Shown: piece after piece, positions 8,276 to 59,287 of the stretch | How positions within the stretch are numbered: the stretch's first letter is position 1 | Layout of the letters: each line of letters starts with the position of its first letter | IMG/VR virus record: IMGVR_UViG_3300031576_000002 | Coordinates: 124,001-188,000 of that record | Direction: 5' to 3' (one strand) | DNA length: 64,000 nt | Position numbers and translations under genes: made by a program | Notes under the pieces: model-generated | Seen by the model: the letters and a program-made list of their open reading frames with translations, nothing else | Database searches by the model: none | Told to the model about the DNA's origin: nothing

Positions 8276-9048
8276 AGATCTCGAAGTTCCGCAGGAAATG
8301 CTGCTAAGAGCCCATCCCGAATACTGCTAACGGCAGCCCTTTCCCTGGTGCGCGTCTGAACTACCAAAGACTCAGTAGAACTGTCCTCTGCCACCACTAT
8401 AGGGGTTGGAACTTCATCTTGGTACAGACTGCTGTAATCGTGAAACTTGAAAGTCCCTCCGGAGAGTTTGTCTGATAGTTTTGTCCAGCCATTTCTTACC
8501 CCGTAAGCGTCCGCTACGATAAGCCCGTGAAGACTGGAGGATAATACTGCTTGAGAGCTTTGAATGTCCCGCAAGACTTGTAGAACAGGCTGGCATGGAT
8601 CGATCACATGCACGTCCGGATTCCGCCGCAAAAACTTACAAAGTTCATCATCATTCATGTCTACATAGTGAGGCAAGATAGAAAGTTCGTACTTCACGCA
8701 CTGATCCCATGAGGTTGGGATTAGGTTTGCCAAAAGCGCAGGATCTCCGAGGGCGCTCGGGGTGGCCTGCGGAATGCGGCAACGGGTAAGTAGTCCTCGC
8801 ACGGCTCGCACTTTTGCATCTGACAGGCTGATTGCGCTCTCCTCGAACATAGCCCCTGTTCCCCATACGAACTGGGAGTAGGAAACGGGGATCTCAGACA
8901 AAATGCTACCCACCGAAATCAAGTCGGCCTCTTCCATCGTGTGCGCACGCTCGACGACTACTCCCAGGACTTCCTGCAAGATGAAAGGTGTCAGCTCGTC
9001 CCCGAAGTTACCATGTCGGTAGCCGCAGGTGCGCCAGTAGGCTTTCAA
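8272..9048 (-). CDS. Polysaccharide pyruvyltransferase family protein
   Basis: NFGDEL, VGSIL, VWGTG, AVRGLLT, LGDPALL, ILPHY, SSSLHGLIVADAYG. Confidence 0.9.
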   Translation of the reverse strand: MKAYWRTCGYRHGNFGDELTPFILQEVLGVVVERAHTMEEADLISVGSILSEIPVSYSQFVWGTGAMFEESAISLSDAKVRAVRGLLTRCRIPQATPSALGDPALLANLIPTSWDQCVKYELSILPHYVDMNDDELCKFLRRNPDVHVIDPCQPVLQVLRDIQSSQAVLSSSLHGLIVADAYGVRNGWTKLSDKLSGGTFKFHDYSSLYQDEVPTPIVVAEDSSTESLVVQTRTRERAAVSSIRDGLLAAFPAELRDL

Positions 9049-10928
9049 AGGAGTTCCGACCAGCCTTCGCGCAAAGCTACATGGCGCAGCATTTCTTGAA
9101 GGCGATTCGTGTAGGTACAGTTAGCTTTCACGAATTCGTGCGCGGCGTCGCGAATTCGTAAGCGCTCGTCTTCATGAGCCAAGTAGTAGTCAATCTTGGC
9201 CTTGAGTTCATCCCATTGATTGTAGCGGTAAAAGACAATGGTCTTACCGTCTTCAAACTCTTCCTGCATGCCTTCAATAAAAGGGTGAATAATGAATCCG
9301 CCCCGCCCAAGAGTCTCGTAGACTCGGTCGCTCGTGTAGCGAGGATGATTGAATCCAGGACATAGTGTATCCCCCACTATGATCTTCACGCTCGCATACA
9401 GTGCATTCAGATCCTCGTTGCGCACAGCCGGCTGCCCAGGCTTGGGCCAGTACCGAAACTGTGGTCCGTACCAAGCTGTCAGGTTCTGCTTGATCTTCTG
9501 CCGATAGGGCAGCCACTCCGGATGGTAGTCGTCTAGCGCCCCGACAAAACCGACATCCGCTGTAAACCTACTGTCTGGGGCAGCCTTGTAACACTCTGGC
9601 TGGAAAACTCCAGCCCGCATGTGAATATGGTTGATACCTGCCAGCCTGAACTGATCCTCTGAACCTCCATCAGCCGTAAAGACGAATTTCGTATTCCAGA
9701 ATGGATCGCCCACGATCGAGTTCTGACGAGCAATTCCCCAGTACAAGTCAAGATGGTAAGAAGCCGTTGGCACGCCGACCGCGTGAAGATCACGGAAGAG
9801 CTTGTTTCCGTCTCCCGCAAAACCCCACGTCCGGGTGTAAAGCAGTAACCGTGTTCCAGTCTCTCGAACTCGCTGCCAGATCGTAGCCGCATCCACTTTG
9901 TTCTCTTGCAGCCGGTGGACGCGGTGCCCCAGCGTTTCAAGAGTCTGAGCTACATGATTTTCGGTCGAGTGCCGAGGCTCAAAATTGCCGATATAGGAAA
10001 TGTCCAACTGTTTTCCTCTTCGCGAACAAACGGCATCCATGAATGCAGCCGTTTCCGCCAGACTGCGCTCGGCTGTACTGAATCTCTGCTGGATCTTCTG
10101 CGCGGCCTCCTGCATGTTTTCCACCTGCTGATTACGACTTCCAGGTCGGCAGTGGGCTATATAAAGCGCTTTGGAGACAGGTTGAATGTCAGCACCGTCA
10201 AACTCTGCCTTTAGCCATAGTGCCCAGTCTTCCAGCGCGGCGTAGTCATCAAACCCGCCTAGCCGTAGGAATTGCTCACGCCGTATCATCGCGCCTATAA
10301 CGATGTAGTTACCGCTTAGAAGTGGACGCTTGCCTGCAATAAAGGGAGCGCCCTTCTTGTTATGTACTACCTTAACCAGAGACGGGTACCGCACATCTCC
10401 AGGTCCCGCAAGCATCTGCTGAATATACGCAGAATCAAGCTCATCGTCTGCGTCCAAAAAGATAAGCCACGCCGAAGTTGCTGCTTCTGCCCCTTTGTTA
10501 CGGGCAGTCTGAATGTTACTAGAATGCACACGGATGATCTCGTTCGGCTTGCGCGTCTGATTCTGCGCCGACAGTACCGCTCGCCCCGCTATCGCATTCC
10601 AGGTCGGCTCGTGCCCGTACGCGGCGATGATGACGGCAACTGTCTCTTCCGTAGGAGCATCCAAGCGCGTCACGGTCACGCGCGTCGCTTCAGGGGCGAC
10701 AGGTGGAACCGCTCCAGGCCGTACAGGCGGGATGAACGGCAGGCGGCCTTTAGGCGCTGACTTCGCCACACCTACGGCGATATTCTGAGCAGACTTCGCG
10801 GCTACATGCGCTTGGCGATCCGCTAGCAGTGCGCGGATCCTCGCGGCCTTGGCAGCGACCGCAGGAGATACGCCTCTACGAGTAGGAATGACAACGCCGC
10901 GCCGCGCCACGATTAGCTTTCTGCCCAT
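9045..10928 (-). CDS. GT2 domain fused to CgeB/Glyco_trans_1_2-type glycosyltransferase
   Basis: ARNKGA..WLIFLDADD, GGFDDYAALEDWALW; C-domain DVGFVG, RNEDLNALYASVKI, SDRVYETLGRGGF; basic Ala-rich N-terminal extension. Confidence 0.85.
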   Translation of the reverse strand: MGRKLIVARRGVVIPTRRGVSPAVAAKAARIRALLADRQAHVAAKSAQNIAVGVAKSAPKGRLPFIPPVRPGAVPPVAPEATRVTVTRLDAPTEETVAVIIAAYGHEPTWNAIAGRAVLSAQNQTRKPNEIIRVHSSNIQTARNKGAEAATSAWLIFLDADDELDSAYIQQMLAGPGDVRYPSLVKVVHNKKGAPFIAGKRPLLSGNYIVIGAMIRREQFLRLGGFDDYAALEDWALWLKAEFDGADIQPVSKALYIAHCRPGSRNQQVENMQEAAQKIQQRFSTAERSLAETAAFMDAVCSRRGKQLDISYIGNFEPRHSTENHVAQTLETLGHRVHRLQENKVDAATIWQRVRETGTRLLLYTRTWGFAGDGNKLFRDLHAVGVPTASYHLDLYWGIARQNSIVGDPFWNTKFVFTADGGSEDQFRLAGINHIHMRAGVFQPECYKAAPDSRFTADVGFVGALDDYHPEWLPYRQKIKQNLTAWYGPQFRYWPKPGQPAVRNEDLNALYASVKIIVGDTLCPGFNHPRYTSDRVYETLGRGGFIIHPFIEGMQEEFEDGKTIVFYRYNQWDELKAKIDYYLAHEDERLRIRDAAHEFVKANCTYTNRLQEMLRHVALREGWSELL

Positions 10929-11125
10929 CGCAGGTAGAGGTTATATTCGGCGCTAGTTCCGCTATAGATAGCGCGTTGCACGATCCGTGAAAGAATCACA
11001 TCCAGATCGTAGTGAGCGAGCAGATACTCTTCCGCCTCTTCCCGCGTTGAGAACGTCCCCACCCGCCGAAACAGCAGCTCGCTGAAGCGCTTCAACAGTG
11101 GCGCTGGACGGTAGCCCGCAGTCAT
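10913..11125 (-). CDS. Hypothetical protein
   Basis: 70-aa ORF with overlapping start/stop on both sides. Confidence 0.5.
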   Translation of the reverse strand: MTAGYRPAPLLKRFSELLFRRVGTFSTREEAEEYLLAHYDLDVILSRIVQRAIYSGTSAEYNLYLRWAES

Positions 11126-11358
11126 CGCTTTCGACGTTGGTTGATCGTATCGCGAAGGACATCGGCCACGTCCGCATGCTGCTCTTTGCGCGCCTTGATG
11201 CGCGGAGACCCACGTTCTCCCCGCTCTGGCAAGTTTGCAGGCTGGAAGTGATGCCCAACTGCTCTAGGCGTATTCCAGTTCTTGCACTCTTCCAGGATCG
11301 TGAGGCGGGCTACTTCGTTGACGGCCATGCCGAGATAGGTGAGATTCGTGCGGCTCAT
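11122..11358 (-). CDS. Hypothetical protein (start revised to ATG 11358)
   Basis: GAGG SD upstream of MSRTNL; the longer track ORF overlaps the Nudix remnant. Confidence 0.5.
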   Translation of the reverse strand: MSRTNLTYLGMAVNEVARLTILEECKNWNTPRAVGHHFQPANLPERGERGSPRIKARKEQHADVADVLRDTINQRRKR

Positions 11359-11371
11359 TTCCACTTTGACC

Positions 11372-11473
11372 TCAAAGCAAGTTGTTAACGGCGTAGGCGA
11401 CACCAGAATGGAGCGAACTGGGCAGGCTGTCAAGCTCAAACCACCCCCAGTCATCATTTTTCTTTTTCTGCAT
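11372..11473 (-). pseudogene. Displaced second copy of the Nudix gene 3' end (33-aa mini-ORF)
   Basis: MQKKKNDDWGWFELDSLPSSLHSGVAYAVNNLL vs Nudix C-terminus NSEWGWFSPEALPSPVHPNVKALL (N, WGWF, LPS, H, V shared); ATG overlaps the HNH stop (TGATG). Confidence 0.8.
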
Positions 11474-12033
11474 CAACCCGTCTGCTTCAATTTTAACGCT
11501 CTGTACCTAGCTCTTTGCCTTTGCTTAGCCTTTTCCCGAAATTCTGCACGGGTCTTGTACCATCGGTTTTTCTTATCTCTATCCCACTTTCTTACTTTTT
11601 CACGATACGCAGAATCTGTTAAAAACTTCTCTTTACGATCTGTACGAACTCTAGCGTTCCAGCAAGCAATGCAAGCTCTTCCGCCACTAACTGCGCGCAC
11701 ATTAGACCCTTCAAGCCTGTGCAAACCTTTCAAGCACATATTATTTAAGTGCGCTATAATAAAAGGATTCCTCCCTCGGTGACAATTTTCTCTCGGAGTT
11801 ACCGGCTCTAAGTGCTGCGGGTTTACGCATGCTGGAACTCGGCATAAATGGTCTATTTGAAGATTTACTGGAATCGGTCCCACCTGGACGGTGTAAGAGT
11901 AACGGTGTGCCCACACTGCTGTACCGTTTACAGAAGTTTTTCCGTAACCCTTTACATTAGTAGGACCTTTCCATAGCCAGCATCCGTCCGATTTCCGGAC
12001 CCTCGCCCAAAACCTTTCTTCCGATTCTGTCAT
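11473..12033 (-). CDS. Free-standing HNH homing endonuclease
   Basis: CWLWKG..GYG, AHRYSY..GPIP..IDHLCRVPACVNPQHLEPVTPREN; AT-richer than flanks. Confidence 0.92.
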   Translation of the reverse strand: MTESEERFWARVRKSDGCWLWKGPTNVKGYGKTSVNGTAVWAHRYSYTVQVGPIPVNLQIDHLCRVPACVNPQHLEPVTPRENCHRGRNPFIIAHLNNMCLKGLHRLEGSNVRAVSGGRACIACWNARVRTDRKEKFLTDSAYREKVRKWDRDKKNRWYKTRAEFREKAKQRQRARYRALKLKQTG

Positions 12034-12500
12034 AAGAGCGCTTTTACATTTGGGTGCACAGGAGATGGCAAAGCCTCTGGACTAAACCACCCCCACTCAG
12101 AATTTTCCCAGTTTAGTGCTACATTGCGCGACATCGCTTCCGCAGCGCCTTCTTCCACTTCGACCAGATAAGTAGTGTATGCGAAACCGCCGGAACGATA
12201 TACCGTCTCGCCCGCTCTATGCACTTCTGGCAGCCCGCCAAGCTCTTCCTCCGCTTCTGAAATTGCGCCTGCCCACTCGCTCTCACCAGGTTCTACTCTC
12301 CCGCCGGGAATGCCCCAGAGCCCTGGATCCATCACGTCTTGCGAGCGCTTCACGAGCAGGATTCTACCATCGCCTCGCCGGATCAAAAGTCCGGCTGCGC
12401 GCTTGCCCCACCGCACACGACCTTCCTCGTCACGAGAAAGCTCGCCGCCTTCATCGCGCGGAGCGCCCCACTTGCGTAGAATGGCGACTACTGGCGACAT
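12030..12500 (-). CDS. Nudix hydrolase
   Basis: Nudix box GGRVEPGESEWAGAISEAEEELG (RE replaced by SE); ILLVKRS..GLWGIPGG. Confidence 0.9.
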   Translation of the reverse strand: MSPVVAILRKWGAPRDEGGELSRDEEGRVRWGKRAAGLLIRRGDGRILLVKRSQDVMDPGLWGIPGGRVEPGESEWAGAISEAEEELGGLPEVHRAGETVYRSGGFAYTTYLVEVEEGAAEAMSRNVALNWENSEWGWFSPEALPSPVHPNVKALL

Positions 12501-13486
12501 GCCTGTCTCACCAAGAACCTGCCTGTCCGATCTCCAATCGTGAGCGTCTCTTCCTTGAATCCGTAGGACTTAGCCAAGTTTTTGTAGTAGATCGTGACTT
12601 TGTTTGCGTCCAGAGTAGGATCCCGCTGCCGCAGCGTCTCTTCCGTGTGGATCGCAACTCGATCAATTCCTTTCGATCTCGCCCACTGAAGCAGCGTCGC
12701 CATGCCTTCTTCAGCCCAGTCTGCAAAAAGTGAGAGCGCGTACCGCTTCATCTTGTCCAGCTCTTCGATCGTCAACCCTCTTCGCTCGAACTCGGCCTTG
12801 GTCGCTCCGAACCGCCACGGCTCCACCTTCTCCAGCACTTGCTCTCGGACCTTCACGTTCTCAATGCTCTCGACGAATTCCTCGTACGTCTCGTGCGTCA
12901 AGATCGTCTTGGCCTGATCGAACGCTGTGAATACGTCGCCCTGGATTTCGTCTACCAGGAGAAGATCGTTACTGACCTTGTCCAGCCGGATCCAGCCAAC
13001 AGTCTTCTCTCTAACCGGATGCTTGGAGTAATGGCTACCCTTGTAGATCACGTCAAGGAATTCCTCGAACTCTTCGTACTTGGCGACTAGCTCATCAAGA
13101 TGCGCGGAACGATTGATCTGCATGACGATCTGCTTCGCATCCCGGTAGCTAGTCTCGGGATCGTGATACTTGCCGTAGGATACTTCGTACCTTCCCGGCT
13201 CCAGGTGCTCTAGGTAGGCTTCAATATCTTCGCGCTTCACAACAGGCTGGTTTTTTCTCAGATCTGTGAGCTGCTGTGTATACCTCTGCGAGATGCTCTG
13301 GAACTTGCGCTGGAACTCCCGCCAAGGAAGTTGGTCGAGGTTTTCCCGCTCGTACACTCCAAGAACGTAGCGCAGAGAATCTTCCAGCCGGGAGAGCGTC
13401 TGCTGGGGAACGTCTTGGCCCCGGCGCTTGAGCCTAGTTGGAGTGCTCCCGCCTAAGCATTGAATGGCTTTACGCAATCGTTCCAT
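12488..13486 (-). CDS. Hypothetical protein with GNAT-like DEIQ(S/G)D module (start revised to ATG 13486)
   Basis: HPVREKTVGWIRLD..LVDEIQGD..LLQWARSKGIDRVAI..YYKNL..YGF; homologous to two modules of the 1156-aa ORF. Confidence 0.7.
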   Translation of the reverse strand: MERLRKAIQCLGGSTPTRLKRRGQDVPQQTLSRLEDSLRYVLGVYERENLDQLPWREFQRKFQSISQRYTQQLTDLRKNQPVVKREDIEAYLEHLEPGRYEVSYGKYHDPETSYRDAKQIVMQINRSAHLDELVAKYEEFEEFLDVIYKGSHYSKHPVREKTVGWIRLDKVSNDLLLVDEIQGDVFTAFDQAKTILTHETYEEFVESIENVKVREQVLEKVEPWRFGATKAEFERRGLTIEELDKMKRYALSLFADWAEEGMATLLQWARSKGIDRVAIHTEETLRQRDPTLDANKVTIYYKNLAKSYGFKEETLTIGDRTGRFLVRQACRQ

Positions 13487-13487
13487 A

Positions 13488-13823
13488 TCAGTAAACCGTA
13501 TCTCTTTCTGCGCGGCGGTATTGCGATTCCCAAGAAGTCGCCCAGATGTCGTACACATTCCTGTGACAGTGCGGATGGATCCAGGCGTACTGCAAAGTTT
13601 TTGTGTGCGGCTTTCTACAGATCAAGCAGTTAACGACTTTGGGGAAAGCACGAGGTTTCAGGGGTTTCTTGAAATTCCGCGCAATGCTCTGCGCGACCTT
13701 ACGAGCAGCTCTCTTGCGGCACGTCCTCGTACAACGCTTAACGGCAAAGCCTGCCTTGAACTTCTTCCCGCACATATCGCACACCTTCGTGTAGAGCGGG
13801 CGCTTCTTTTTCATCGGCGTCAC
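13488..13823 (-). CDS. Basic Cys-rich zinc-finger-like protein
   Basis: CDMCGKKF..CTRTC and CLIC..HPHC. Confidence 0.6.
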   Translation of the reverse strand: MTPMKKKRPLYTKVCDMCGKKFKAGFAVKRCTRTCRKRAARKVAQSIARNFKKPLKPRAFPKVVNCLICRKPHTKTLQYAWIHPHCHRNVYDIWATSWESQYRRAERDTVY

Positions 13824-13906
13824 TTTAGAGCGCGCAGCAGCGGACTGTCAGAACCGTCTTTGGCCTTTAGCGCGTAGTCTGGGTCGCAGTAAAAGGAGTA
13901 GTTCAC
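13820..13906 (-). pseudogene. Displaced second copy of the glycoside hydrolase 3' end (28-aa mini-ORF)
   Basis: (V)NYSFYCDPDYALKAKDGSDSPLLRALK vs GH C-terminus GYGLVGGADGDSQLLAELR; GTG overlaps the HNH stop and TGA overlaps the next start. Confidence 0.6.
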
Positions 13907-14493
13907 TTCTCCGAGAGTTTAAGCAGTCTACGCTTTTTCTTGTTTTTAACGGCAATAAATAGCTTATTATTTTCATAGTAGAGCTTAGAGGCGGCTCTTG
14001 CCTTTTCCCGGTAGACAGGGTCTTTAGCGTACCTCTCGCACTTTCTCGCGGCACTAGCCTGCAACCAGGCGTCCGTGCTTTTCTCGATCCGATCGCGCTC
14101 TGTACGACAGGCAATACAGGTCCTACGGCCTTGGTACCAGTATACGTTAGCACCTTCTAGCGCGTGCATACCTTTTTTACAGATATTGGTACGGTGTACA
14201 ATAGCCGAGGGGGCTTTCCCGCGCCCTATATTCTCTGCCTGTGTACACACCTGAAGATGATCTGGATTCACGCAGTCCCTCCGACCACAAACCATGTGAT
14301 CTATTACTAAGCCCGGTGGAATAGGCCCCATGAACATTTCCCACGCTACTCGATGCGCTCCAACCGGCCTGCCATTCTTAGAAAACTTTCCGTAACCTAA
14401 AGCCTTAGACCCGCTCCACAGAAGACAGCCTTCTTCGGACTCCTGGATATAACTCAAGAAGCGTTCTGCAAAGTTAGTAAGCCGTGGAGCCAT
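13903..14493 (-). CDS. Free-standing HNH homing endonuclease
   Basis: GCLLWSG..GYGKF, AHRVAW..GPIP..IDHMVCGRRDCVNPDHLQVCTQAEN. Confidence 0.92.
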   Translation of the reverse strand: MAPRLTNFAERFLSYIQESEEGCLLWSGSKALGYGKFSKNGRPVGAHRVAWEMFMGPIPPGLVIDHMVCGRRDCVNPDHLQVCTQAENIGRGKAPSAIVHRTNICKKGMHALEGANVYWYQGRRTCIACRTERDRIEKSTDAWLQASAARKCERYAKDPVYREKARAASKLYYENNKLFIAVKNKKKRRLLKLSEK

Positions 14494-14515
14494 TTATACC
14501 GTCCGGAGCAGCCGA

Positions 14516-15391
14516 TTAGGGCGCCCTACTCGTAGCTCTAAGCTCAGCTAAAAGTTGAGAATCACCGTCTGCTCCGCCTACAAGTCCGTAGCCGTTTTCT
14601 TCACGCCAGGCATACCACGTCCACAAATCCACTTTCACGCCCAGCCGTGCCCACACGGCGGGCGTCTGCCGGAAGTAGTCGAGATGCTCGTTGCGCTTCG
14701 GACGGCCAAATTCGGTCACCCAGACTTGTTTGCCCTTCTTCCACACATCGTCCACCAGCTCGGCAACCGCAGGCACCCTTTCCCATGAGTCCCCGTACAC
14801 ATGCAGCCCGAACACATCTACCAGGTCAAGACCTCCTCTTTTCACAAACTCTTCATTCAGCCGTAACTTTCCTTCATAGGTCGGTGGAAGCGTTGCCGCA
14901 GAAACGAGTAGTTTCCCCGGCGAGCGCCTGCGTATCTCAGGAGAGATCACACGCAACCAGTCTAGGTACTCCCCAAGTGACCAGCATAAAAATCCTGCCG
15001 CACAGTTGTCTACTTCGTTTTCAAGTTCCCACCCTATCACCCGGCTGTCGTCGCGAAATTTGTCCACCAGTGTAAGATCTGTAGAGGATGTAAGGATCAA
15101 CAAGAATCTGGCATTCAGTGGAGAGTTTTTTACCAGTCTTTCTACGAAACTCTCTGTATCTTTTGGAACTTGCATGCGAATCATCGAAGCGACTGCCATG
15201 ATAGCTGGAACATCTTCTGGTAGGGCTCCACTAGGGTGCAGGTGAATCCCCCGCTGCTTGTAGCTCAGCAGCGGCTGCTCGTCCGGGGGCACGAGAATAT
15301 CCGCAAGCTCAGCACAAGAAGCTGTCAGCGCAAGCGCGGTCAACAGAGATAGGAAGCGCTGCAAGGATCGGCCTTTCGGGTAAGTTGACAT
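14516..15391 (-). CDS. Clan GH-A glycoside hydrolase, predicted lipoprotein
   Basis: Lipobox-like LALTASC; acid/base WELENEV; FGLHVY; nucleophile VWVTEFG. Confidence 0.82.
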   Translation of the reverse strand: MSTYPKGRSLQRFLSLLTALALTASCAELADILVPPDEQPLLSYKQRGIHLHPSGALPEDVPAIMAVASMIRMQVPKDTESFVERLVKNSPLNARFLLILTSSTDLTLVDKFRDDSRVIGWELENEVDNCAAGFLCWSLGEYLDWLRVISPEIRRRSPGKLLVSAATLPPTYEGKLRLNEEFVKRGGLDLVDVFGLHVYGDSWERVPAVAELVDDVWKKGKQVWVTEFGRPKRNEHLDYFRQTPAVWARLGVKVDLWTWYAWREENGYGLVGGADGDSQLLAELRATSRAP

Positions 15392-15403
15392 TTTCAGGAT
15401 TCT

Positions 15404-15411
15404 TACTATAC
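15404..15411 (-). promoter_or_regulatory. GTATAGTA -10-like box
   Basis: Upstream of the GH gene; one of at least 8 copies. Confidence 0.6.
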
Positions 15412-15532
15412 TACTCTCGTGGAACTAGATCCAGAAGTTCTCCAGGAGATCGCTGAGCGCGCTGCTCGAATCTCTAGTCGTGCTCGGTCCATCAATGCCC
15501 GTCTCACTCAGGTAAACGCCAAGGTGGAGGCG

Positions 15533-15721
15533 CTAGCCCTCAAAGCCTCGGTACGTCGTGATAACCTTGAGCACCTCCTCGACGTTCGAGACTCGAAGGT
15601 CGATCCGCTCAAGGTCCGCGTCTAGCGTCCTCAAGACGCTCAAGACGTTGCTCAAGTCGTCCTCACTTACCGGCGCATCTACGGCAGTCAGCAGGCTCAG
15701 GACTGCTTGGATCTCTTTCAT
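15533..15721 (-). CDS. Small coiled-coil hypothetical protein
   Basis: 62-aa heptad-like ORF coupled (ATGA) to the upstream stop. Confidence 0.5.
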   Translation of the reverse strand: MKEIQAVLSLLTAVDAPVSEDDLSNVLSVLRTLDADLERIDLRVSNVEEVLKVITTYRGFEG

Positions 15722-16194: not shown

Positions 16195-19100
16195 TCACCA
16201 GATCCGGGTTTCTATCCCGCTCGGCACGACCAAGAATGCGCGGAAGGGAGGACGCCCAATGCGGGCAGCCAAACGAGAAATCTTACTAGCAATCTTCTTC
16301 TGCCAGATACGGTACGTGTGCTCTTGCTCCTCTTCGTCACCACGCGGAACGAACGAAATCTCTCCCGGCTGGAATCCCATCTGCTGCGGCAGCTTCTCGT
16401 AGTAGCGCCGCACCTTTCTACTCTTTGGCATTCCACCCTCGGAGAGAAGGCCGCCGCGCGTAATGCGCAAAGTATCGTCCGTAGCAAGGTAGAGCATCTT
16501 GACGCCCTTCTCCCTTGCGGCCTCAGCAACGGCTTGAATGAGTGCGTACTCCCACTGCCCCAGCACTTTCTCGATCTGAGGCTTGACCTTGCGGTACATC
16601 GCACTAGGATCGGCTACATCTTGCCCCTTCTCCCAAAGTGTAGGCCAGCCTTTCGGCAAGTCCCTTGAATCATCTGCGACACCGGCTAGCACCTCGTCGA
16701 GCTTCAAAAACTGCTCGTACACATCCGACTGAATCTCGTCCACAAACCATTCCGTATCCGAGAGTGGGTCTATTCTCGCCCAGCCGATCGTCTCTTGACT
16801 CCGCACGGGATGACCCGCGTAAGTGCCCTCTTTCAGCAGGTACTCCATGACTTTCCGAGCAGGTGGCGTCATGCCCTCCAACATCTCTTCTGTCATGTCC
16901 AGGCGGAGAACGGTCTGCCTGACGTTCCTAGATCGCTGGAGTCCGGTCCAGCCCTTGTAAGAAACATCGAACGTATTGCCGGAGCTATCCAGGTAGGCTT
17001 GGATCGACTGCGTGGTGACGTTGTTGCCTTTGACAATACGATCTTTGAAAGACCAGTTCTCAATCCATGGATAGCGCTTCTTGATCTCCCGGAATGGAAT
17101 CGCACCGCCTGCCACTTCTACCTCTTTGAGAAGGGTGCGGAGGAATTCTTTTCCGGGGACGTACTCCACTTTTGAAGATGCTGCACCTGCACCGCCTATG
17201 GTCGCGGGCAGGAATGGATGCTTGCTCCTTAAACTGTTGTACTCCTCTTCTATGTGCTCTACGACATCGTCGAGTCCTGGCGCCAAAGCTGCGGATGAGT
17301 CCAAGATAGCGTGAGCCGCTGTAAGCAGCGGCGGAAGCGTGTCAAAGTGCTCGCATAGACTGCGCAGCTTCTCGTATTTCACGGGGAGTACATCGCCCAA
17401 TTCCTCGTCTAGCTGTTCCAGCAGTGATTCGACAGCAAAATCATGAGCCAACCCTCTGAGCCAGTCGCCCTGGCTGTCGCGTATGAACTTTTCTAGGTCC
17501 TCGTCACTGGCATAGTCGCCAATAAAAGCCGGCCATTCATTGCTGAATTCCTTGACCCAGTCAACATTGTAGCCTTTCGATAACCACTCCATCGTGCTGA
17601 CAACGCCGTAATTAGCGATCTCCTCCTGAAGCGACTCTCCTTCTAAAAAGTTAGCCTTCGCAGAAGGATCCAGTTTACCAAAAACTTTTTCTACGTCATC
17701 GGCGCTCACACGATTCTTAGCGAAGAGGTACTCGTAGAATCCCTCTAGCGCTCTTGCGTCTTCGGCCAGACTGTTATTTTCCGCGTACGTCTTATAGTCA
17801 GACTCGTCCATGTCTTCTACACGGCTCCGCACTTCCTGTTCAAAGTTGTCCTCTACAAGATCCTCGCTCGGATCCTCCATTCTGTACTTGCCCGGCTCTT
17901 CTTGGCAGAAAAGATCATAAAGATAGTCGTGGACTTCCGCGACAAAAGCTTGCTGGCGACGAGTCTCTTCCTGCTGCAAGCGCTCCTGCTCCGCAGGATT
18001 AAGCGGAATCAGTTCCAGTTGCCGCGAATCCGTCGGTATAAGGGGCTCGTACACAGGCGGCTGAAGATCTTCCTGCCCAAGAATGCCAAGCGCTGTCTTC
18101 AAGCGACTGGCGCCTTTACGGGCGCCCAAATCTTTCACCCACAAGTCCGCGTACACTTCCCCGTACAATTTGATCGGGTCTTCAATTTTCTTGAAGCCCT
18201 CTTCTGCGGGCAGCTTCTCGTAGAAGCGCTCCAGCGTCTCGTCTGATGCGCCGCCCCACCGATTCGCCTGGATCTCTGCATTCGTCCAGATCAGATAGCG
18301 AATGTTGTTACGCCGTGCAGCATCCTCCAAGTAATCAATAACCATATCGGTCCAGTCGGAGAATCGGTTAATCAGCGCATTTACAATCCGGTGGACTTTC
18401 TGCTTGCTCAGTTTGTAATCCACCGCCAACTTGCCAATCACTTCTTTATCGAGGTAGCGGTAGATGCTGCGCATGAAATCGCTTTGAATGTTCTCCACCA
18501 CCCACGCCTTGCCAGATTCCCCCACGCTCGGAACAGCAATCCACTCGGGTTCACCATCGATGCGGATGTAGGCAATGGCTTCGCCGTAGTGACCTGGCAA
18601 ACTTTGGCCGTACAGCTTTCGCGCCAGCACCCATCCCGGTTCGCCCGCAATCTGTTTTCCGTCTGCGACAACTGCATTCCAGATTTCATCGGTAGGGTAG
18701 AACGCAAACGTATAGGGCACGTCTGATATTGTAGCGCCCTTGTACTCCTTCTCGCCGCGCTCGACATGAAATGTCATCGGATCTAGGCGCGCTACCGCTT
18801 CCTGAAGCTCGGCTACGGTCGCCTCTGTTCCAATCCGTGCGATAATGTCGCGCCGGATGTAACCCGGCACGTTGCGGAGCAAAGCCTCGATGTCACTCTG
18901 GATGAGCTGTTCATCGGGAGTCCGGCCCTCAAGCTGCTTCTCTACTTCTTGCACACTACGCGGAAGGTGGTCGGCGCTACCGGCATGGTCAATGTCTATT
19001 TCTTCAATTCTTGCTTCTTCTGCCTCATCGCGCTTCTCTTGCGCGATCTCCATGAAACGCTCAAGAGTGGGAATGCCGCGGTTGGAGTAGCCTTGCGCCA

Positions 19101-19665
19101 AATTCATTACCACCCCAGCATCTGCACTGACTATCCAATTATGTTGACTATTAGCTAGAAACTCCTCTCCTAGTGCGTACATGGGATCAGCGTCCGGCCA
19201 GTCTACCCCGTTCCACCATTCCTCTTTCCACGCCCGCAAGCTATCAAATAGCAGGACGTCGATTTTCGCCTGATCCAGACTGGGCAGCACAACCTTCAAA
19301 GCTGCTTCAAGTTCATCGCCGTCAAACTTACTGCTTACGGGGTCTGCCTCTTCAAGAGCATTCCCCGCTTCCTCGCCATGATCTTTTCGGACAATGTCTA
19401 CCGCTGACGACCAAATATCTTTCCCGCCGTCAATGCTTGGACGGTCCTCATCATTCCAATACTCCCATACGTCAAACTCGACATCGGTGCGTCCTACGAC
19501 TACATCAGGAACAAGGTAACGTCCGTAGCGAGCGTCCGCCCCATGGTCCAAGTTCCAGATCGCCTCGTGGGGGAAGAGTTCCTCGATCGCTGCTACAACG
19601 TCTTCGCTACGAATCCCAGGCATTGGACCCTCGACGCAAAAAATCGGACACGGCATCTGCCGCAT
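16195..19665 (-). CDS. Large acidic multidomain (polyvalent-like) protein with two GNAT-like DEIQSD modules
   Basis: 1156 aa; YIRIDG..VVENIQSD..AARRNNIRYL..FYEKLP..GF and WARID..VDEIQSD..AAREKGVKMLYL..YYEKLP..GF. Confidence 0.8.
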   Translation of the reverse strand: MRQMPCPIFCVEGPMPGIRSEDVVAAIEELFPHEAIWNLDHGADARYGRYLVPDVVVGRTDVEFDVWEYWNDEDRPSIDGGKDIWSSAVDIVRKDHGEEAGNALEEADPVSSKFDGDELEAALKVVLPSLDQAKIDVLLFDSLRAWKEEWWNGVDWPDADPMYALGEEFLANSQHNWIVSADAGVVMNLAQGYSNRGIPTLERFMEIAQEKRDEAEEARIEEIDIDHAGSADHLPRSVQEVEKQLEGRTPDEQLIQSDIEALLRNVPGYIRRDIIARIGTEATVAELQEAVARLDPMTFHVERGEKEYKGATISDVPYTFAFYPTDEIWNAVVADGKQIAGEPGWVLARKLYGQSLPGHYGEAIAYIRIDGEPEWIAVPSVGESGKAWVVENIQSDFMRSIYRYLDKEVIGKLAVDYKLSKQKVHRIVNALINRFSDWTDMVIDYLEDAARRNNIRYLIWTNAEIQANRWGGASDETLERFYEKLPAEEGFKKIEDPIKLYGEVYADLWVKDLGARKGASRLKTALGILGQEDLQPPVYEPLIPTDSRQLELIPLNPAEQERLQQEETRRQQAFVAEVHDYLYDLFCQEEPGKYRMEDPSEDLVEDNFEQEVRSRVEDMDESDYKTYAENNSLAEDARALEGFYEYLFAKNRVSADDVEKVFGKLDPSAKANFLEGESLQEEIANYGVVSTMEWLSKGYNVDWVKEFSNEWPAFIGDYASDEDLEKFIRDSQGDWLRGLAHDFAVESLLEQLDEELGDVLPVKYEKLRSLCEHFDTLPPLLTAAHAILDSSAALAPGLDDVVEHIEEEYNSLRSKHPFLPATIGGAGAASSKVEYVPGKEFLRTLLKEVEVAGGAIPFREIKKRYPWIENWSFKDRIVKGNNVTTQSIQAYLDSSGNTFDVSYKGWTGLQRSRNVRQTVLRLDMTEEMLEGMTPPARKVMEYLLKEGTYAGHPVRSQETIGWARIDPLSDTEWFVDEIQSDVYEQFLKLDEVLAGVADDSRDLPKGWPTLWEKGQDVADPSAMYRKVKPQIEKVLGQWEYALIQAVAEAAREKGVKMLYLATDDTLRITRGGLLSEGGMPKSRKVRRYYEKLPQQMGFQPGEISFVPRGDEEEQEHTYRIWQKKIASKISRLAARIGRPPFRAFLVVPSGIETRIW

Positions 19666-22695: not shown

Positions 22696-23914
22696 GACTG
22701 CTTAAGCCGCCACTTGCATAGCAGGTAAGCAGCCTTCTCGTTTCACAGAGGAACTTACAAGCGTATCCTCTCCACGAAGGGATAGCAGAGCCCGGTTTAA
22801 GACGTTTTTAGCCGCGTTGACATCTCTATCAAGGACCAAGCCACAAGCAGAGCAGATATGGACTCTTTCACTCAAACTCTTCTTCACAGTCATTCCACAT
22901 CCGCTGCACTCTTGGCTGGTGCCTCTGGGATTGACTTTTACCACTATCCTACCAGCTTCTTCCGCTTTGTAGGACAGCATGTGGAGCAACATCCCCATTC
23001 CAACATCTTTGAAGCTACGCCTGAATCCACGGCTGAGACCCTGGCTCATACCTTTCAGGTTCAAGTCTTCCACCGCAATCAGATCATACTCTTTGACCAA
23101 AGACTTAGACACTCCATCAAGAATATGCTTCCGAGTTCTTGTAACTTTCTGCCAAGCCTTAGCCAGTACCTTGACGGCTTTCCTTCTACGCTTAGATCCC
23201 TTCTGTCTCCTGGATACCGTTCTTTGAGCATGCTTGAGCTTCTTCTCGTTCTTGGCGTAAACACGTTGCCGCTCAATCAAGATGCCGTCTGAGGTAGCGA
23301 CTAGAGCTTGCATGCCTAGATCAATGCCAATGACTTTGCCAGTCTTGAGAAGAGGAGCTGGAAGCGGTAGCTCACAGGATAAGACGGCGTACCAGCCGTC
23401 AGCTTCTCTTTTGACTGTGACCTCTTTAACCTTGGCATCAGGCGGAAGCTCCCGATAAGGATTCCAGCGGAAGTGTCCCAGCTTGGAAAGATGTAGCTTT
23501 TTGCTGTCAAACTTGAAACCTGACTGATTGTATGTGAAGGAGTCGTACCGATCCCTACTCTTGAATCTGGGAAAGCCTGGCTTCTCTCCACGCTTGACTC
23601 TTCTGAAGAAAGCCTTGTACGTTTTGTCCAGTTTTTGAAGGACTGGGTGAAGAACTCTTGAATAGATCGTGTCATAGCCTTCTACCTGCTTTGAAACATA
23701 CTTAAGCTCTAGGCACTGATCGTAGAAGCTGAGAGTTCTATTATGCTGCTTCCACTCCAGGATTCGTTGTTCCAAAGCACAGTTGTAGAGGAAGCGGCAG
23801 AAATCCAGAAGCCGCTGGAGATTGATCTCCTGGGCCTTGGTAGGTTGGAGGCGGAACTTGTAGGAACGGCGCACGGCTAGAGTGTATCACAAGGGAGTTA
23901 AGGAATCACGCATG
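22689..23914 (-). mobile_element. tnpB-only cassette with terminal inverted repeats and 10-bp TSD (copy 1, 1226 bp)
   Basis: TIRs CATGCGTGATTCCTTAA / CATGCATGACTGCTTAA (14/17); flanks TAGTAGTCAG (22679-22688) and TAGTAGTTAG (23915-23924). Confidence 0.88.
22702..23874 (-). CDS. tnpB: RNA-guided endonuclease TnpB (390 aa)
   Basis: YKFRLQPT HTH; GIDLG, AVEDL, DRDVNAAKN RuvC residues intact; CSGCG/CSACG zinc finger. Confidence 0.95.
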   Translation of the reverse strand: MRRSYKFRLQPTKAQEINLQRLLDFCRFLYNCALEQRILEWKQHNRTLSFYDQCLELKYVSKQVEGYDTIYSRVLHPVLQKLDKTYKAFFRRVKRGEKPGFPRFKSRDRYDSFTYNQSGFKFDSKKLHLSKLGHFRWNPYRELPPDAKVKEVTVKREADGWYAVLSCELPLPAPLLKTGKVIGIDLGMQALVATSDGILIERQRVYAKNEKKLKHAQRTVSRRQKGSKRRRKAVKVLAKAWQKVTRTRKHILDGVSKSLVKEYDLIAVEDLNLKGMSQGLSRGFRRSFKDVGMGMLLHMLSYKAEEAGRIVVKVNPRGTSQECSGCGMTVKKSLSERVHICSACGLVLDRDVNAAKNVLNRALLSLRGEDTLVSSSVKREGCLPAMQVAA

Positions 23915-33148: not shown

Positions 33149-33182
33149 GAAGTCTTCGGCGGCTGGAAACTATCACCTTTAT

Positions 33183-34394
33183 GCGACAGAAGAGGCCGCT
33201 CTGTGCTACAGTATCGGCTATGATTCAGCTCACCCTCCGACTCAAGCTCAGGCCAACTCCTGAGCAGAAGTCTATCTTCTATACCACCTCGGAGCAGCAT
33301 ACTCAATCTTACAACTACGCCTGCAACTTTGGCTGGAAGAACAGCACTGCCAACCGGATCGAGATTCATCATGGTGTCTACCGTGCCCAAAGAGAGGCGA
33401 CTCAGCTTCCTTCTCAACTTGTCGTATCCAGCATTACCAGGGCTTCTGAATCTCTAGCCTCTGCCAAAGCCTTGAGAAGGAAAAAGAAGAAAGTAGCCTG
33501 TCCAAAGTCCAAACTCTGCCCCATCCGATACGATTCAAGATCCTCCACAGTCAATCTCAAAGAAGGCTTTGCCGCTCTAGCAACCGTATCCGGCAGACAA
33601 AGAGTCCAGTTCAAAGTCCCTGACTTTCAACTTCCATACATTGACTGGAAAGTCTGCTCTTCCGATCTTATCCGGAATAGGAAGGGTAACTACTTCCTTC
33701 ATGTCGTAGTCAGCCGTGAAGAGGAACCGTTCATACCCGTTAAGAGAACAGTCGGAGTCGATCTTGGTATCACGCATCCAGCCGTAACTTCCAAGAACAA
33801 GTTTTTGGGTAAGAGGAGCTGGAAGAACGTAGAAAGGAGAAACTTCAAACTGAGGCGTTCCCTTCAAGCCAAAGGCACAAAATCTGCCAAGAGACATCTT
33901 CAAAAGCTCTCTGGTAGACAGAAACGTTTCCGGCGTGACTGTGACCGTGTCTTGAGTAAGCAGTTGGTCCAGTCTTGTAAGAAGGGTTCTACCTTGGTAT
34001 TTGAAAACTTGAAAGAGATCCGATCCGGTAACTCCAAAGGCAAGAGGTTCAACCGGAAGCTCCACGGTTGGAGCTTTGACCAACTTCAAGCCTTTGTAGA
34101 GTACAAAGCAAAGATGAGAGGTATCCAAGTTGTTTACGTGGATCCCCGGTACACCTCTCAGAAATGCTCCAAGTGTAAGTTCAGGAGCAAGAAAAACCGG
34201 ATCTCTCAAAGTAGCTTCCAGTGTCGAAGCTGCGGGTTCAGGATTCATGCTGATCTCAATGCAGCTAGAAACATACGGAAGCGGTATCTTTTTACTCAGG
34301 CTAAAAGTTTGGGTAACGGGCTTATGTCAACAAGCCTAGTGCAGAGGTCAAAAGATCATCTGCAAGCTGCCTGCTTCGGCCGGTAGTAGTTGAT
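33183..34394 (+). mobile_element. IS200/IS605-family (IS1341-like) tnpB-only element
   Basis: Left flank TTTAT with an imperfect hairpin; right end GCAAGC..GGTAGTAGTTGAT; no TIRs; removal restores a TAA stop in the minus-strand gene. Confidence 0.75.
33220..34386 (+). CDS. tnpB: RNA-guided endonuclease TnpB (388 aa; divergent from the other two)
   Basis: LKLRPT; GVDLG, VFENL, HADLNAARNI; CSKC/CRSC. Confidence 0.93.
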   Translation: MIQLTLRLKLRPTPEQKSIFYTTSEQHTQSYNYACNFGWKNSTANRIEIHHGVYRAQREATQLPSQLVVSSITRASESLASAKALRRKKKKVACPKSKLCPIRYDSRSSTVNLKEGFAALATVSGRQRVQFKVPDFQLPYIDWKVCSSDLIRNRKGNYFLHVVVSREEEPFIPVKRTVGVDLGITHPAVTSKNKFLGKRSWKNVERRNFKLRRSLQAKGTKSAKRHLQKLSGRQKRFRRDCDRVLSKQLVQSCKKGSTLVFENLKEIRSGNSKGKRFNRKLHGWSFDQLQAFVEYKAKMRGIQVVYVDPRYTSQKCSKCKFRSKKNRISQSSFQCRSCGFRIHADLNAARNIRKRYLFTQAKSLGNGLMSTSLVQRSKDHLQAACFGR

Positions 34395-35195: not shown

Positions 35196-35996
35196 CTATA
35201 TTTCTGTCCAGGCTCGAACCCGTTCTCGGCACTCCGCCAGATACCCCTCTTGCAGGTCCAGGAAGTGCCAGGACTTGTAAAGAATGAAAGGACTGTGCGA
35301 GGTTGCGATGACCTGGAAACGCTTCGCCAGTTTGGGAACGATCTCATTCCAGAGAACCATTTGATTCGGCAGGCTCAGGCTCATGTCAGGTTCATCGAGC
35401 AGAATCGTACTCGGGCCTGTCCGTGGAAGCGTCTTCACGTACTCCGAGAACGCTGTCCAGCCCTCTACCCACAGGCTGTTATATTTCCGATCTGGATTTT
35501 TTGTAAGGTCCGGAACTTGATCCAGCAACTCTGCGATTCTTTCAATCTTATGGATTCGCCGCTGTCCCTCGCTCGGCTTTTGCGCGATCTCCTGAATCTG
35601 GTCCTTCATCGAAGTCATGCCATCGGCAGAATTCTCGGCCCGGTCCACGAAGAAGGAAAGCCCGTCTCGATCCGCGGCTGCATTGAGAAAGGTTGGAGTC
35701 CCGTCCCATTCTATATTTGCAGTACACTGGCCCGGTGCTCGTATGGCTAAGCAGTCTGGAAGATTGGGCGGCTTCCTCCGCAAAACCCCGATCTCGATAA
35801 TGTCTCCGGGGTCAGGGTGTTTCGACCAGCCTCCTGTCGTGATCCCGCAGTAGACCCCCGTGATCTTGAGCGCAGTCGTCTTCCCGCACCCGTTCGGCCC
35901 AAAGAGAATGTTGACTCCGGGCTTGAACTTGAGCTTGCCCTTGAACGCAGGAAGCTGCGCGGCAAAGCCCGTCTTGACTCGGAAGGACTGGATCAT
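35196..35996 (-). CDS. ABC-type (AAA_21-like) ATPase, leaderless start ATG 35996
   Basis: GPNGCGKT, SEGQ, LLDEPD, ATSHSPF. Confidence 0.88.
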   Translation of the reverse strand: MIQSFRVKTGFAAQLPAFKGKLKFKPGVNILFGPNGCGKTTALKITGVYCGITTGGWSKHPDPGDIIEIGVLRRKPPNLPDCLAIRAPGQCTANIEWDGTPTFLNAAADRDGLSFFVDRAENSADGMTSMKDQIQEIAQKPSEGQRRIHKIERIAELLDQVPDLTKNPDRKYNSLWVEGWTAFSEYVKTLPRTGPSTILLDEPDMSLSLPNQMVLWNEIVPKLAKRFQVIATSHSPFILYKSWHFLDLQEGYLAECRERVRAWTEI

Positions 35997-36002
35997 CGGA
36001 CG

Positions 36003-36010
36003 TACTATAC
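36003..36010 (-). promoter_or_regulatory. GTATAGTA box, leaderless
   Basis: TATAGT 7 nt before ATG 35996. Confidence 0.65.
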
Positions 36011-36047
36011 AGCGCGCTTCCAAAAATACGCACCTATCCCGTCGAGC

Positions 36048-37273
36048 CATGCGTGACTCCTTAAGCCCTCTGTGCTACCATCCAGCCATGCGGCGTTCCT
36101 ACAAGTTCCGGCTTCAACCGACCAAGGCTCAGGAGATCAATCTCCAGAGGCTCCTGGACTACTGCCGCTTTCTCTACAACTGCGCTTTGGAGCAGCGTAT
36201 TACAGAATACAAACAGCATAAGAGGACTCTCAGCTACTACGATCAAGCCTTAGAACTTAAGCACGTATCCAAGCAGGTAGAAGGCTACGACACAGTCTAC
36301 GCCAAAGTCTTGCAGGTTGTCCTTCAAAAACTGGATCTAGCTTACAAGGCTTTCTTCAGAAGGATCAAGCGTGGAGAGAAGCCGGGCTTTCCACGGTTCA
36401 AGAGTAGGGATCGGTACGACTCCTTTACCTACAACCAGTCTGGTTTCAAGTTTGACAGTCAAAGGCTGCATCTTTCCAAGCTGGGCCATTTCCGCTGGAA
36501 TCCTTATCGACAACTTCCACCAGACGATAAGGTCAAAGAGGTCACAGTCAAAAGAGAAGCCGACGGTTGGTACGCAGTCTTATCCTGTGAGCTACCCCTT
36601 CCAGAACCTCTTCCCGCGACTGGAAAGGTCGTTGGTATTGATCTAGGCATGCAAGCTCTAGTTGCTACCTCAGATGGAATCGTAATTGAACGCCAACGTG
36701 TCTACGCCAAGAATGAGAAGAAGCTCAAGCATGCTCAGAGAACGGTTTCCAGAAGAAAGAAAGGCTCTAACCGTAGAAGAAAAGCAGTCAAGGTATTGGC
36801 TAAGGCTTGGCAGAAAGCTACAAGAACTCGGAAGCATATTCTTGATGGAGTGTCTAAGCAGTTGGTACAGAACTATGATCTGATTGCGGTTGAAGACCTG
36901 AACCTGAAAGGGATGAGTCAAGGGCTCAACCGTGGATTCAGGCGTAGCTTCAAGGATGTCGGAATGGGGATGTTGCTTCACATGCTGTCCTACAAAGCGG
37001 AAGAAGCTGGTAGGATAGTGGTGAAAGTAGATCCCAGAGGAACCAGCCAGGAATGTAGTGGATGCGGAGCAACTGTGAAGAAGAGTTTGAAAGAAAGAGT
37101 TCATAACTGCTCTGCTTGTGGCTTGGTCCTTGATAGAGATGTCAACGCGGCTAAAAACGTCTTAAGCAGGGCTCTGCTATCCCTTCGTGGAGAGGATACG
37201 CTTGTAAGTTCCTCTGTGAAGCGAGAAGATTTCTTAAGTGCTGCTCAGGCAGCGGCTTAAGCAATCACGCATG
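36048..37273 (+). mobile_element. tnpB-only cassette with terminal inverted repeats and 10-bp TSD (copy 2, 1226 bp)
   Basis: TIRs CATGCGTGACTCCTTAAGCC / CATGCGTGATTGCTTAAGCC (18/20); flanks CCCGTCGAGC (36038-36047) and CCCGTCGAAT (37274-37283). Confidence 0.9.
36088..37260 (+). CDS. tnpB: RNA-guided endonuclease TnpB (390 aa), close paralog of 22702-23874
   Basis: Same length and motifs as copy 1; stop TAA lies inside the right TIR. Confidence 0.95.
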   Translation: MRRSYKFRLQPTKAQEINLQRLLDYCRFLYNCALEQRITEYKQHKRTLSYYDQALELKHVSKQVEGYDTVYAKVLQVVLQKLDLAYKAFFRRIKRGEKPGFPRFKSRDRYDSFTYNQSGFKFDSQRLHLSKLGHFRWNPYRQLPPDDKVKEVTVKREADGWYAVLSCELPLPEPLPATGKVVGIDLGMQALVATSDGIVIERQRVYAKNEKKLKHAQRTVSRRKKGSNRRRKAVKVLAKAWQKATRTRKHILDGVSKQLVQNYDLIAVEDLNLKGMSQGLNRGFRRSFKDVGMGMLLHMLSYKAEEAGRIVVKVDPRGTSQECSGCGATVKKSLKERVHNCSACGLVLDRDVNAAKNVLSRALLSLRGEDTLVSSSVKREDFLSAAQAAA

Positions 37274-58368: not shown

Positions 58369-58677
58369 TCATGTCTTTCTCGTACGCACAGGCAAGGCAC
58401 AACAGTCGGAAAAATTTACAAGGTCGCGGAAGAAATAGCGACCGGATAAGGCAACGGCAGCCGCTTCATCCATGCCACGCAAAGTTGAAGTCCAAATCCA
58501 ATTTGGTTGCGGATTGATTCTAACAATCACTACGGCTTCATCAACAGTAGGCAATCGCCAGTCCGAGAAGCCTCCTTCCCGATAAGACTTGGCGTACCTC
58601 TTGGCAGCATTCCAGTCCAAACGATGGCTTGAAAAAGTTGCTACCTGCAACTCGGTCTTGATTGCGCTCTTGGTCAT
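58369..58677 (-). CDS. DUF1566 (Lcl-like) domain protein
   Basis: LDWNAAKRYA....GGFSDWRLPTVDE..WIWTST..LPVR. Confidence 0.85.
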   Translation of the reverse strand: MTKSAIKTELQVATFSSHRLDWNAAKRYAKSYREGGFSDWRLPTVDEAVVIVRINPQPNWIWTSTLRGMDEAAAVALSGRYFFRDLVNFSDCCALPVRTRKT

Positions 58678-59246
58678 ACTCTTGCCCCATCCGCGCTATA
58701 CCCCCGCCCATGAACCGCGACTGAGAAATAGGTTCCATCATCCGCACGGAACTCAGCTCGTTCCGTGCTGGGATTGTCTGAGAGGATCTGCTGAAGCAGC
58801 GACACCGCGAGCATCTGAGCATTGCGCTGGTCCACCCGAACCATGATGTTATTGGGGCCTTTCCTATCCTTCCACTGCACGATCTCCAGCTTGAGGACCG
58901 GCTTCGGCATGGGCTCGGTAGAGGCGCGCTTCGGCTTTTCCGAGGACTTGCAACTGCGCACCGGCAAAGCGCGGCCGTCGTAGGAGTGGCCCTGGTCGAA
59001 GAAGCCGGAGTAGCCAAAGCTGAGGCCGACGTAAGCCGCCTCCGAGCCGCGCGATTCGGAGGTCCAAACCCACACTGGTTGTGGATTGGTTCTGGCGATC
59101 TCTTTCGCCTCAGCAATAGTAGGAAGACGCCAATCAGTATGACCGCCTTCTCGGTAGTCCTTGGCGTATTCCGCCGCCTGCTTCCAAGTCAGATAGACGC
59201 TCGTCGTGGGCGCTACCTGCAATTCAGCCTTTGCTCGCTTAGTCAT
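58674..59246 (-). CDS. DUF1566 domain protein with C-terminal extension (tandem paralog)
   Basis: LTWKQAAEYA....GGHTDWRLPTIAE..WVWTSE..ALPVR. Confidence 0.85.
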   Translation of the reverse strand: MTKRAKAELQVAPTTSVYLTWKQAAEYAKDYREGGHTDWRLPTIAEAKEIARTNPQPVWVWTSESRGSEAAYVGLSFGYSGFFDQGHSYDGRALPVRSCKSSEKPKRASTEPMPKPVLKLEIVQWKDRKGPNNIMVRVDQRNAQMLAVSLLQQILSDNPSTERAEFRADDGTYFSVAVHGRGYSADGARV

Positions 59247-59287
59247 CTCAATCCTTCCAGTTGCAGTCGAACACGGATCTGCCCTTT

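Follow-up and report, generated by a model that had tools for sequence, protein, structure and literature searches.

An HNH endonuclease gene between two versions of a Nudix gene end in a cave phage: an apparent replacement gene end of the type described for fungal mitochondria

The end of a Nudix gene was analysed in a 64,000-nucleotide window (positions 124,001 to 188,000) of the 205,227-bp viral contig IMGVR_UViG_3300031576_000002, which derives from a cave metagenome. All relevant genes lie on the minus strand (Table 1). The Nudix gene (Pfam NUDIX, E 7.9e-18) is followed by an HNH_3 endonuclease gene, HNH1 (Pfam HNH_3, E 1e-10), whose ATG overlaps the Nudix TGA as ATGA. Behind HNH1 lies a mini-ORF of 34 codons when read from a TTG, or 33 codons when read from the ATG that overlaps the HNH1 stop as TGATG, and this mini-ORF repeats the last 25 codons of the Nudix gene. 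The recognisable stub starts at the codon equivalent to E132, a few codons after the HNH1 stop, and its own stop lies 13 nt before the next gene, which has no Pfam match. A paralogue of HNH1, termed HNH2 (42% identical, BLASTP E 8e-39; Pfam HNH_3, E 9e-15), lies 2 kb away and starts 22 nt behind a glycoside-hydrolase-like gene.

Table 1. Features of the two HNH loci in window coordinates, with GC3 and, in brackets, its percentile among same-size windows in the other long ORFs of the window (mean GC3 0.61).
Feature	Coordinates	Strand	Size	GC3
356-aa gene upstream of the Nudix gene	12488..13558	-	356 aa	
Nudix hydrolase gene, read as a hybrid of a resident 5' part and a carried-in 3' end	12030..12500	-	156 aa	codons 1-105, 0.58 (39th); codons 106-156, 0.45 (4.7th)
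In-frame (current) version of the duplicated 3' end; the low-GC tract may reach back to about 12185 (codon 106)	12030..12107	-	codons 132-156 plus stop	0.40 (5th)
HNH1, free-standing HNH_3 endonuclease gene (predicted His-Me finger)	11473..12033	-	186 aa	0.41 (0th, below every background window)
Open mini-ORF containing the Nudix stub	11372..11476	-	34 codons from TTG	
Displaced stub of the Nudix 3' end	11372..11461	-	equivalent of codon 132 to the stop	0.64 (66th)
Next gene, ATG at 11358	11122..11358	-	78 aa	
Glycoside-hydrolase-like gene upstream of HNH2	14516..15391	-	291 aa	last 30 codons, 0.37 (2nd)
HNH2, paralogue of HNH1	13903..14493	-	196 aa	0.52 (3rd)
Probable displaced stub of the hydrolase-like gene's 3' end; next ATG at 13814	13820..13900	-	26 codons (13823..13900) plus stop	0.65

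The similarity between the Nudix gene end and the mini-ORF was assessed with several methods. BLASTP aligned Nudix residues 132-152 with mini-ORF residues 6-26 (10/21 identical, 15/21 similar, E 2e-7); an earlier note, made from the sequence alone, had counted 10 of 20. None of 5000 shuffles reached the Smith-Waterman score of 69 (shuffle mean 23.5, sd 4.2), and in the six-frame translation of the whole window each of the two was the other's best non-self match. The Nudix protein has 32 homologues in a search of 5.8 billion proteins, none above 59% identity, which share the C-terminal pattern LNWEND.W.WF....LP...HP[GN]V; both the in-frame end and the stub fit this pattern, although the stub departs from the family at a nearly invariant position (HS instead of HP). 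A profile HMM built only from these 32 homologues, with the window's own protein left out, found the stub as the second-best of 2113 window fragments (E 1.8e-5, profile positions 118-145 of 148). The stub alone also hit the C-termini of 27 metagenomic Nudix genes, with E-values down to 1e-8. An independent Logan contig of 42 kb from the source run spans the region at even depth with no differences, so the arrangement is not a join made by one assembler. The observation put forward in the earlier note, namely an HNH gene flanked by two versions of the Nudix 3' end, is thus confirmed.

We then asked which of the two ends came with the HNH gene. The current end and HNH1 share an unusually low GC3, whereas the stub has the value typical of the genome (Table 1), with the reservation that GC3 is measured on only 25-30 codons for the gene ends and stubs. 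The gene boundaries agree with this, as the current end overlaps the HNH1 start while the stub keeps a short spacer in front of the next gene. Of the eight identical residues that have a choice of codon (the identical non-Trp residues), five use different codons in the two copies, indicating that the copies diverged for a long time under selection on the protein. Phylogeny did not discriminate. In a comparison with 31 homologues, 23 scored closer to the current end, and the closest homologue (61% identical) resembles both ends but looks slightly more like the current one, sharing with it rather than with the stub the stretch LPSP.HPNVK. After calibration, however, a test of N-terminal against C-terminal identity found the current end and the stub equally compatible with the gene body (residuals of −0.21 and −0.23 sd). 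For the window's own Nudix gene, which end is native is therefore inferred from composition, gene boundaries and analogy, not shown.

Close HNH-less relatives of this phage were searched for in several collections. A DNA search of the region against 50,697 phage records gave no match, and scans of IMG/VR with the Nudix protein and with the 356-aa neighbour returned only the source contig. The protein search and a metagenome scan yielded nothing closer than 59–61% identity, and the best Nudix homologue (61%) shares no neighbouring genes. None of 79 metagenomic Nudix loci has a relative of either window HNH within the fetched flanks of up to 3 kb, and the three contexts of distant Nudix homologues that were inspected show no HNH after the Nudix gene and no synteny downstream. 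This is the patchy distribution expected of a mobile element. For the source sample only Logan contigs were compared, which can show presence but not absence; they contained no joints and no HNH-less variant. The HNH family itself is huge (more than 3199 hits), but no member is closer than 49–60%, so no sister copy of the cassette turned up.

The second HNH locus probably has the same layout. The hydrolase-like gene has a weak Pfam match (Glyco_hydro_cc, E 0.0014, below the family cut-off) and 36 homologues. In three homologue-only profiles the fragment behind the HNH2 stop was the best non-self hit among the 2113 fragments (E 0.057, 0.076 and 0.52; conditional E 8e-5), and it always aligned to the extreme C-terminus and stopped where the profile stops. 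Pairwise tests were weak: BLASTP found nothing between the hydrolase-like protein and the ORF after HNH2, 26 of 5000 shuffles reached the score against the last 45 aa, and the pairwise z was 1.5, so that only profiles detect this copy. The GC3 contrast seen at the Nudix locus is repeated here, and the stub ends 5 nt before the next gene.

To find out whether the layout occurs elsewhere, 80 HNH_3 loci were fetched from IMG/VR and, for each, the last 50 residues of the upstream gene were compared with the three frames just after the HNH stop. This gene-aware screen replaced a first flank-against-flank tblastn screen, which was swamped by low-complexity off-frame matches in high-GC loci; one further locus (z 3.0) turned out to be such an artefact. 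The window's Nudix locus scored z 10.8, and among 62 other loci only one, termed L043, stood out (z 12). A second set of 65 loci gave no further case, so that the layout is clear in 1 of about 127 other viral HNH_3 loci. The screen, being pairwise, misses diverged copies such as the one behind HNH2. A mirrored screen, in which a repeat of the 5' end of the downstream gene was sought in front of the HNH, found nothing.

In L043 a 99-aa gene (about 45% identical to proteins annotated as Holliday junction resolvase in Streptomyces phages) is followed by a 137-aa HNH_3 gene and then by a 17-codon copy of the gene's end, which overlaps the next gene. The two copies share 14/17 residues but only 36/54 bases, and 9 of the 14 identical residues use different codons. 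The earlier note had predicted that HNH-less Nudix alleles would end with the downstream remnant; for L043 the corresponding comparison could be made. Seventy-nine relatives of the gene (72–96% identical) were fetched and none has the HNH. The 33 closest end with the stub version (48–54 of 54 nt identical to the stub, 35–38 of 54 to the in-frame end) and have the same 19-nt overlap with the next gene, whereas the in-frame version resembles a more distant clade. Homology to the HNH-less allele L091 resumes exactly at the first base of the stub, while on the other side it fades over the last 50–90 nt of the gene. The region to the right of the insertion point is almost invariant among the 33 HNH-less alleles, and the carried-in copy differs from it at 18 of 54 positions. 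The prediction was thus fulfilled in a parallel case with the same enzyme family and the same layout, though not for the window's own gene.

Our preferred explanation, in which we have fairly high confidence, is that each HNH gene is the endonuclease of a composite homing element that consists of a replacement 3' end for the invaded gene followed directly by the HNH ORF. The analysis itself demonstrates that two versions of the gene end flank the HNH, that only the upstream version is in frame with the gene and gives an intact, family-typical hybrid gene, that this version and the HNH share an atypical composition, that the downstream version has the composition of the genome and keeps the junction with the next gene, and that in L043 the closest HNH-less relatives carry the downstream version. 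The remainder is inference. In this view, the HNH would cut or nick HNH-less alleles within the conserved 3' coding region, near the left edge of the stub, and the break would be repaired from an HNH-bearing genome during co-infection, with the body of the gene as left homology arm and the stub plus the next gene as right arm. The host gene would stay functional because the element supplies a full, in-frame, family-typical C-terminus and stop. The element-bearing genome would be immune both because the carried-in end is heavily recoded and because the stub lacks the left half of the site. The arrangement probably arose when an HNH lying just behind the gene in a diverged donor was copied into a genome with no homology downstream, so that repair closed at the break. 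The core interpretation of the earlier note, that an endonuclease element brings in a replacement 3' end and displaces the original, is supported by the composition, by the probable second copy and by L043. Its further proposal of a cleavage-resistant end rests only on heavy divergence at synonymous sites, as neither cleavage nor resistance was assayed. The promoter and terminator scan was not above chance.

Of the alternatives, a repair scar without further mobility survives best, although we consider it unlikely. In this case the HNH would be an ordinary intergenic free-standing endonuclease gene, and one inaccurate repair event would have copied the donor's gene end together with the HNH and left the recipient's end behind as a decaying by-product, without the block moving as a unit. 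The rarity of the layout among HNH_3 loci, the HS at a nearly invariant position of the stub and the failure to find a second phage with the same cassette, for the window or for L043, are in line with this possibility. However, the layout recurs with three different target genes, twice (once probably) within 3 kb of one genome beside paralogous HNH genes; the stubs are still open and keep most family-conserved residues; and once formed, the block has homology arms on both sides, so nothing prevents it from homing.

Reverse polarity, in which the in-frame end is the phage's own and the HNH arrived with the stub as a fragment of a previous host's Nudix gene, also remains but is very unlikely. 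The resemblance of the closest homologue and of 23 of 31 homologues to the current end would favour it, but calibration removes this distinction, GC3 groups the current end with the HNH and the stub with the genome at both loci, the gene boundaries point the same way, and in L043 the polarity is shown directly and runs opposite to this reading. Local duplication, either of the gene end in tandem or as a second tandem Nudix gene largely overwritten by the HNH, is less likely still. The two copies do lie 0.6 kb apart on the same strand, but synonymous sites are close to saturation while the family-conserved residues are kept in both copies, which is not the behaviour of a silent copy drifting in place; the copies differ in GC3, none of the Nudix loci examined shows a tandem pair, and the L043 alleles exclude this reading for the parallel case. 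Chance similarity, an assembly chimera or an intron joining the gene body to the stub can be dismissed, despite the shortness of the stub and the metagenomic origin of the contig, given the alignment statistics, the independent Logan contig, the absence of any Rfam match, introns included, in 10800..15600 at E up to 1, and the fact that the gene reads on in frame into a complete family-typical C-terminus.

The closest described system is that of the mobile endonuclease ORF elements (mORFs) of fungal mitochondria that carry a replacement C-terminus, as in Allomyces macrogynus atp6, Glomus atp6, atp9, cox2 and nad3, Rhizopus atp9 and Mortierella cox2 (Paquin et al. 1994, as described in PMC3630166). 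There too, an endonuclease ORF is inserted at the 3' end of a conserved gene, a foreign C-terminus in phase with the gene lies in front of the ORF, and the native C-terminus, which matches endonuclease-free relatives, is displaced behind it, while the inserted copy is diverged; that the downstream copy is the native one is shown here for L043 and only inferred for the window. The present case differs in that the host is a phage genome rather than an organelle and the enzyme is an HNH_3 protein. PMC3630166 says only that the mORFs encode endonucleases; the fungal enzymes are of the LAGLIDADG or GIY-YIG type. The phage ORFs are separate from the host gene, with HNH1 in another frame than the Nudix gene, rather than fused in phase as in some of the fungal cases, and the duplicated part is short (17–26 codons).

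The free-standing seg and mob genes of T4-like phages (reviewed in PMC2988022) likewise are stand-alone endonuclease genes between phage genes, with a patchy distribution, that are expected to cut a neighbouring conserved gene in endonuclease-free phages and to spread by break repair with co-conversion of flanking markers. In the T4 cases, as reviewed, the endonuclease gene sits between intact genes and no duplicated or displaced gene end is mentioned, whereas HNH1 lies inside the coding region, supplies the missing part and is flanked by two versions of the target gene's end. The T4 mobA plus gene 60 bypass cassette (Bonocora et al. 2011) and the mobE insertion that splits nrdA of phage Aeh1 (Friedrich et al. 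2007) are also entries of a phage endonuclease gene into a coding region without an intron or intein, with gene function kept through extra sequence carried with the element or through a split gene; they give a translational bypass or a gene in two pieces, not a replacement end plus a stub.

Homing endonuclease genes are thought to enter coding sequence only when hidden in an intron or intein, and otherwise to stay between genes or to split the gene. A replacement gene end is a third route, documented for fungal mitochondria; no description of it for phages was found in our literature search, which covered few subscription papers, so that an earlier description cannot be excluded. It is about as likely as not that phage HNH_3 endonucleases have a previously undescribed way of homing, in which they invade the conserved 3' coding ends of genes, with no intron or intein, by carrying a recoded replacement end that both keeps the gene working and makes the carrier immune, with the displaced native end serving as the right-hand homology arm and with hybrid genes and swapped C-termini between diverged phages as a side effect. 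If confirmed, this would explain short orphan ORFs behind phage HNH genes, show how endonucleases create hybrid genes between distant phages, give annotators a simple signature (a gene end repeated just after an HNH gene) and point directly to the likely target site, because the left edge of the stub marks where to look. The L043 family already offers natural HNH-less substrates.

The HNH proteins of the window have the sequence features of the HNH_3 family, including its conserved catalytic and zinc-binding residues: D61, H62, C64, C69, H74 and N83 are invariant in an 81-sequence alignment and present in both HNH1 and HNH2. No PDB chain was matched at the sequence level by HNH1. An AlphaFold model of HNH1 was confident (pLDDT 95), and its top Foldseek hits in the PDB were the His-Me finger homing endonucleases I-PpoI (prob 0.99) and I-HmuI (prob 0.96), but E-values were only 4e-3 to 0.1 and TM-scores 0.2–0.3, so that the predicted His-Me finger fold is neither secured nor contradicted by the structural comparison. 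Both solved enzymes are intron-encoded. The model of HNH1 shows a small beta-rich core and ends in one predicted 64-residue helix (residues 122-185).

A second HNH_3 gene, 42% identical to the first (HNH1), was found 2 kb away. It shows the same layout behind a glycoside-hydrolase-like gene, with a probable 26-codon stub of that gene's end right after the HNH stop. The same arrangement (gene end, HNH_3 gene, repeated gene end) is present in an unrelated viral contig, locus L043. Here, HNH-less alleles could be compared in the way the earlier note had proposed for the Nudix gene: all 79 HNH-less relatives were examined, and the closest carry the downstream version. Both stubs of the window are open from a start codon that overlaps the HNH stop (TGATG after HNH1 and GTGA after the second gene, HNH2). 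The stubs might therefore be translated by coupling; whether that matters for expression of the next gene is unknown. The C-terminal third of HNH1 (residues 122-185) is predicted with high confidence as one uninterrupted, very basic helix of 64 residues, to which no top structural match has a counterpart.

Positions of the additional features in the window and in other contigs
Feature	Sequence	Coordinates	Strand
Second HNH_3 gene with probable stub, and glycoside-hydrolase-like gene	window	13820..14493 and 14516..15391	minus
Gene end, HNH_3 gene and repeated gene end	L043 (IMGVR_UViG_3300033182_000410)	2081-2986
Overlaps of HNH stop and stub start codon (HNH1 and HNH2)	window	11473..11476 and 13903..13906
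C-terminal helix of HNH1	window	11476..11670
Nudix homologue P0030 with TAA in place of GAA	L008 (Ga0062594_100197536)	1285-1372
Nudix homologue with extra N-terminal region	L006	6001-6756
356-aa protein and 1156-aa protein	window	12488..13558 and 16195..19665	minus
Protein with two glycosyltransferase domains	window	9045..10928	minus
Inverted gene pair	window	22705..23886 and 35854..37257	minus and plus
Third paralogue of the inverted pair	window	33151..34383	plus
Adjacent paralogous ORFs	window	58372..58695 and 58677..59330	minus

Two features were seen among the homologues of the Nudix protein. In a soil-metagenome homologue (P0030, on contig L008), TAA replaces the GAA codon that corresponds to E132, the codon where the window's stub begins, while the rest of the C-terminus is still readable in frame; this could be a nonsense mutation, a sequencing error or a coincidence. 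Some homologues, among them the one on contig L006 and P0018 (251 and 247 aa), carry an extra N-terminal region of about 100 residues. In those contigs the gene follows a DUF192 gene, and NIF phosphatase and DNA ligase genes lie nearby.

Elsewhere in the window, the 356-aa protein next to the Nudix gene resembles the C-terminal 285 residues or so of the 1156-aa protein (23% identity, E 6e-11); neither has a Pfam match. The members of the inverted gene pair lie 12 kb apart and are 89% identical over 394 aa, whereas the third paralogue is about 30% identical; the function of these genes was not examined. The two adjacent paralogous ORFs are 56% identical over 103 aa. Finally, a protein of 627 aa has two glycosyltransferase domains (Glyco_trans_1_2, E 3e-21; Glycos_transf_2, E 1e-7), which together with the hydrolase-like gene suggests a sugar-related module around the HNH insertions.
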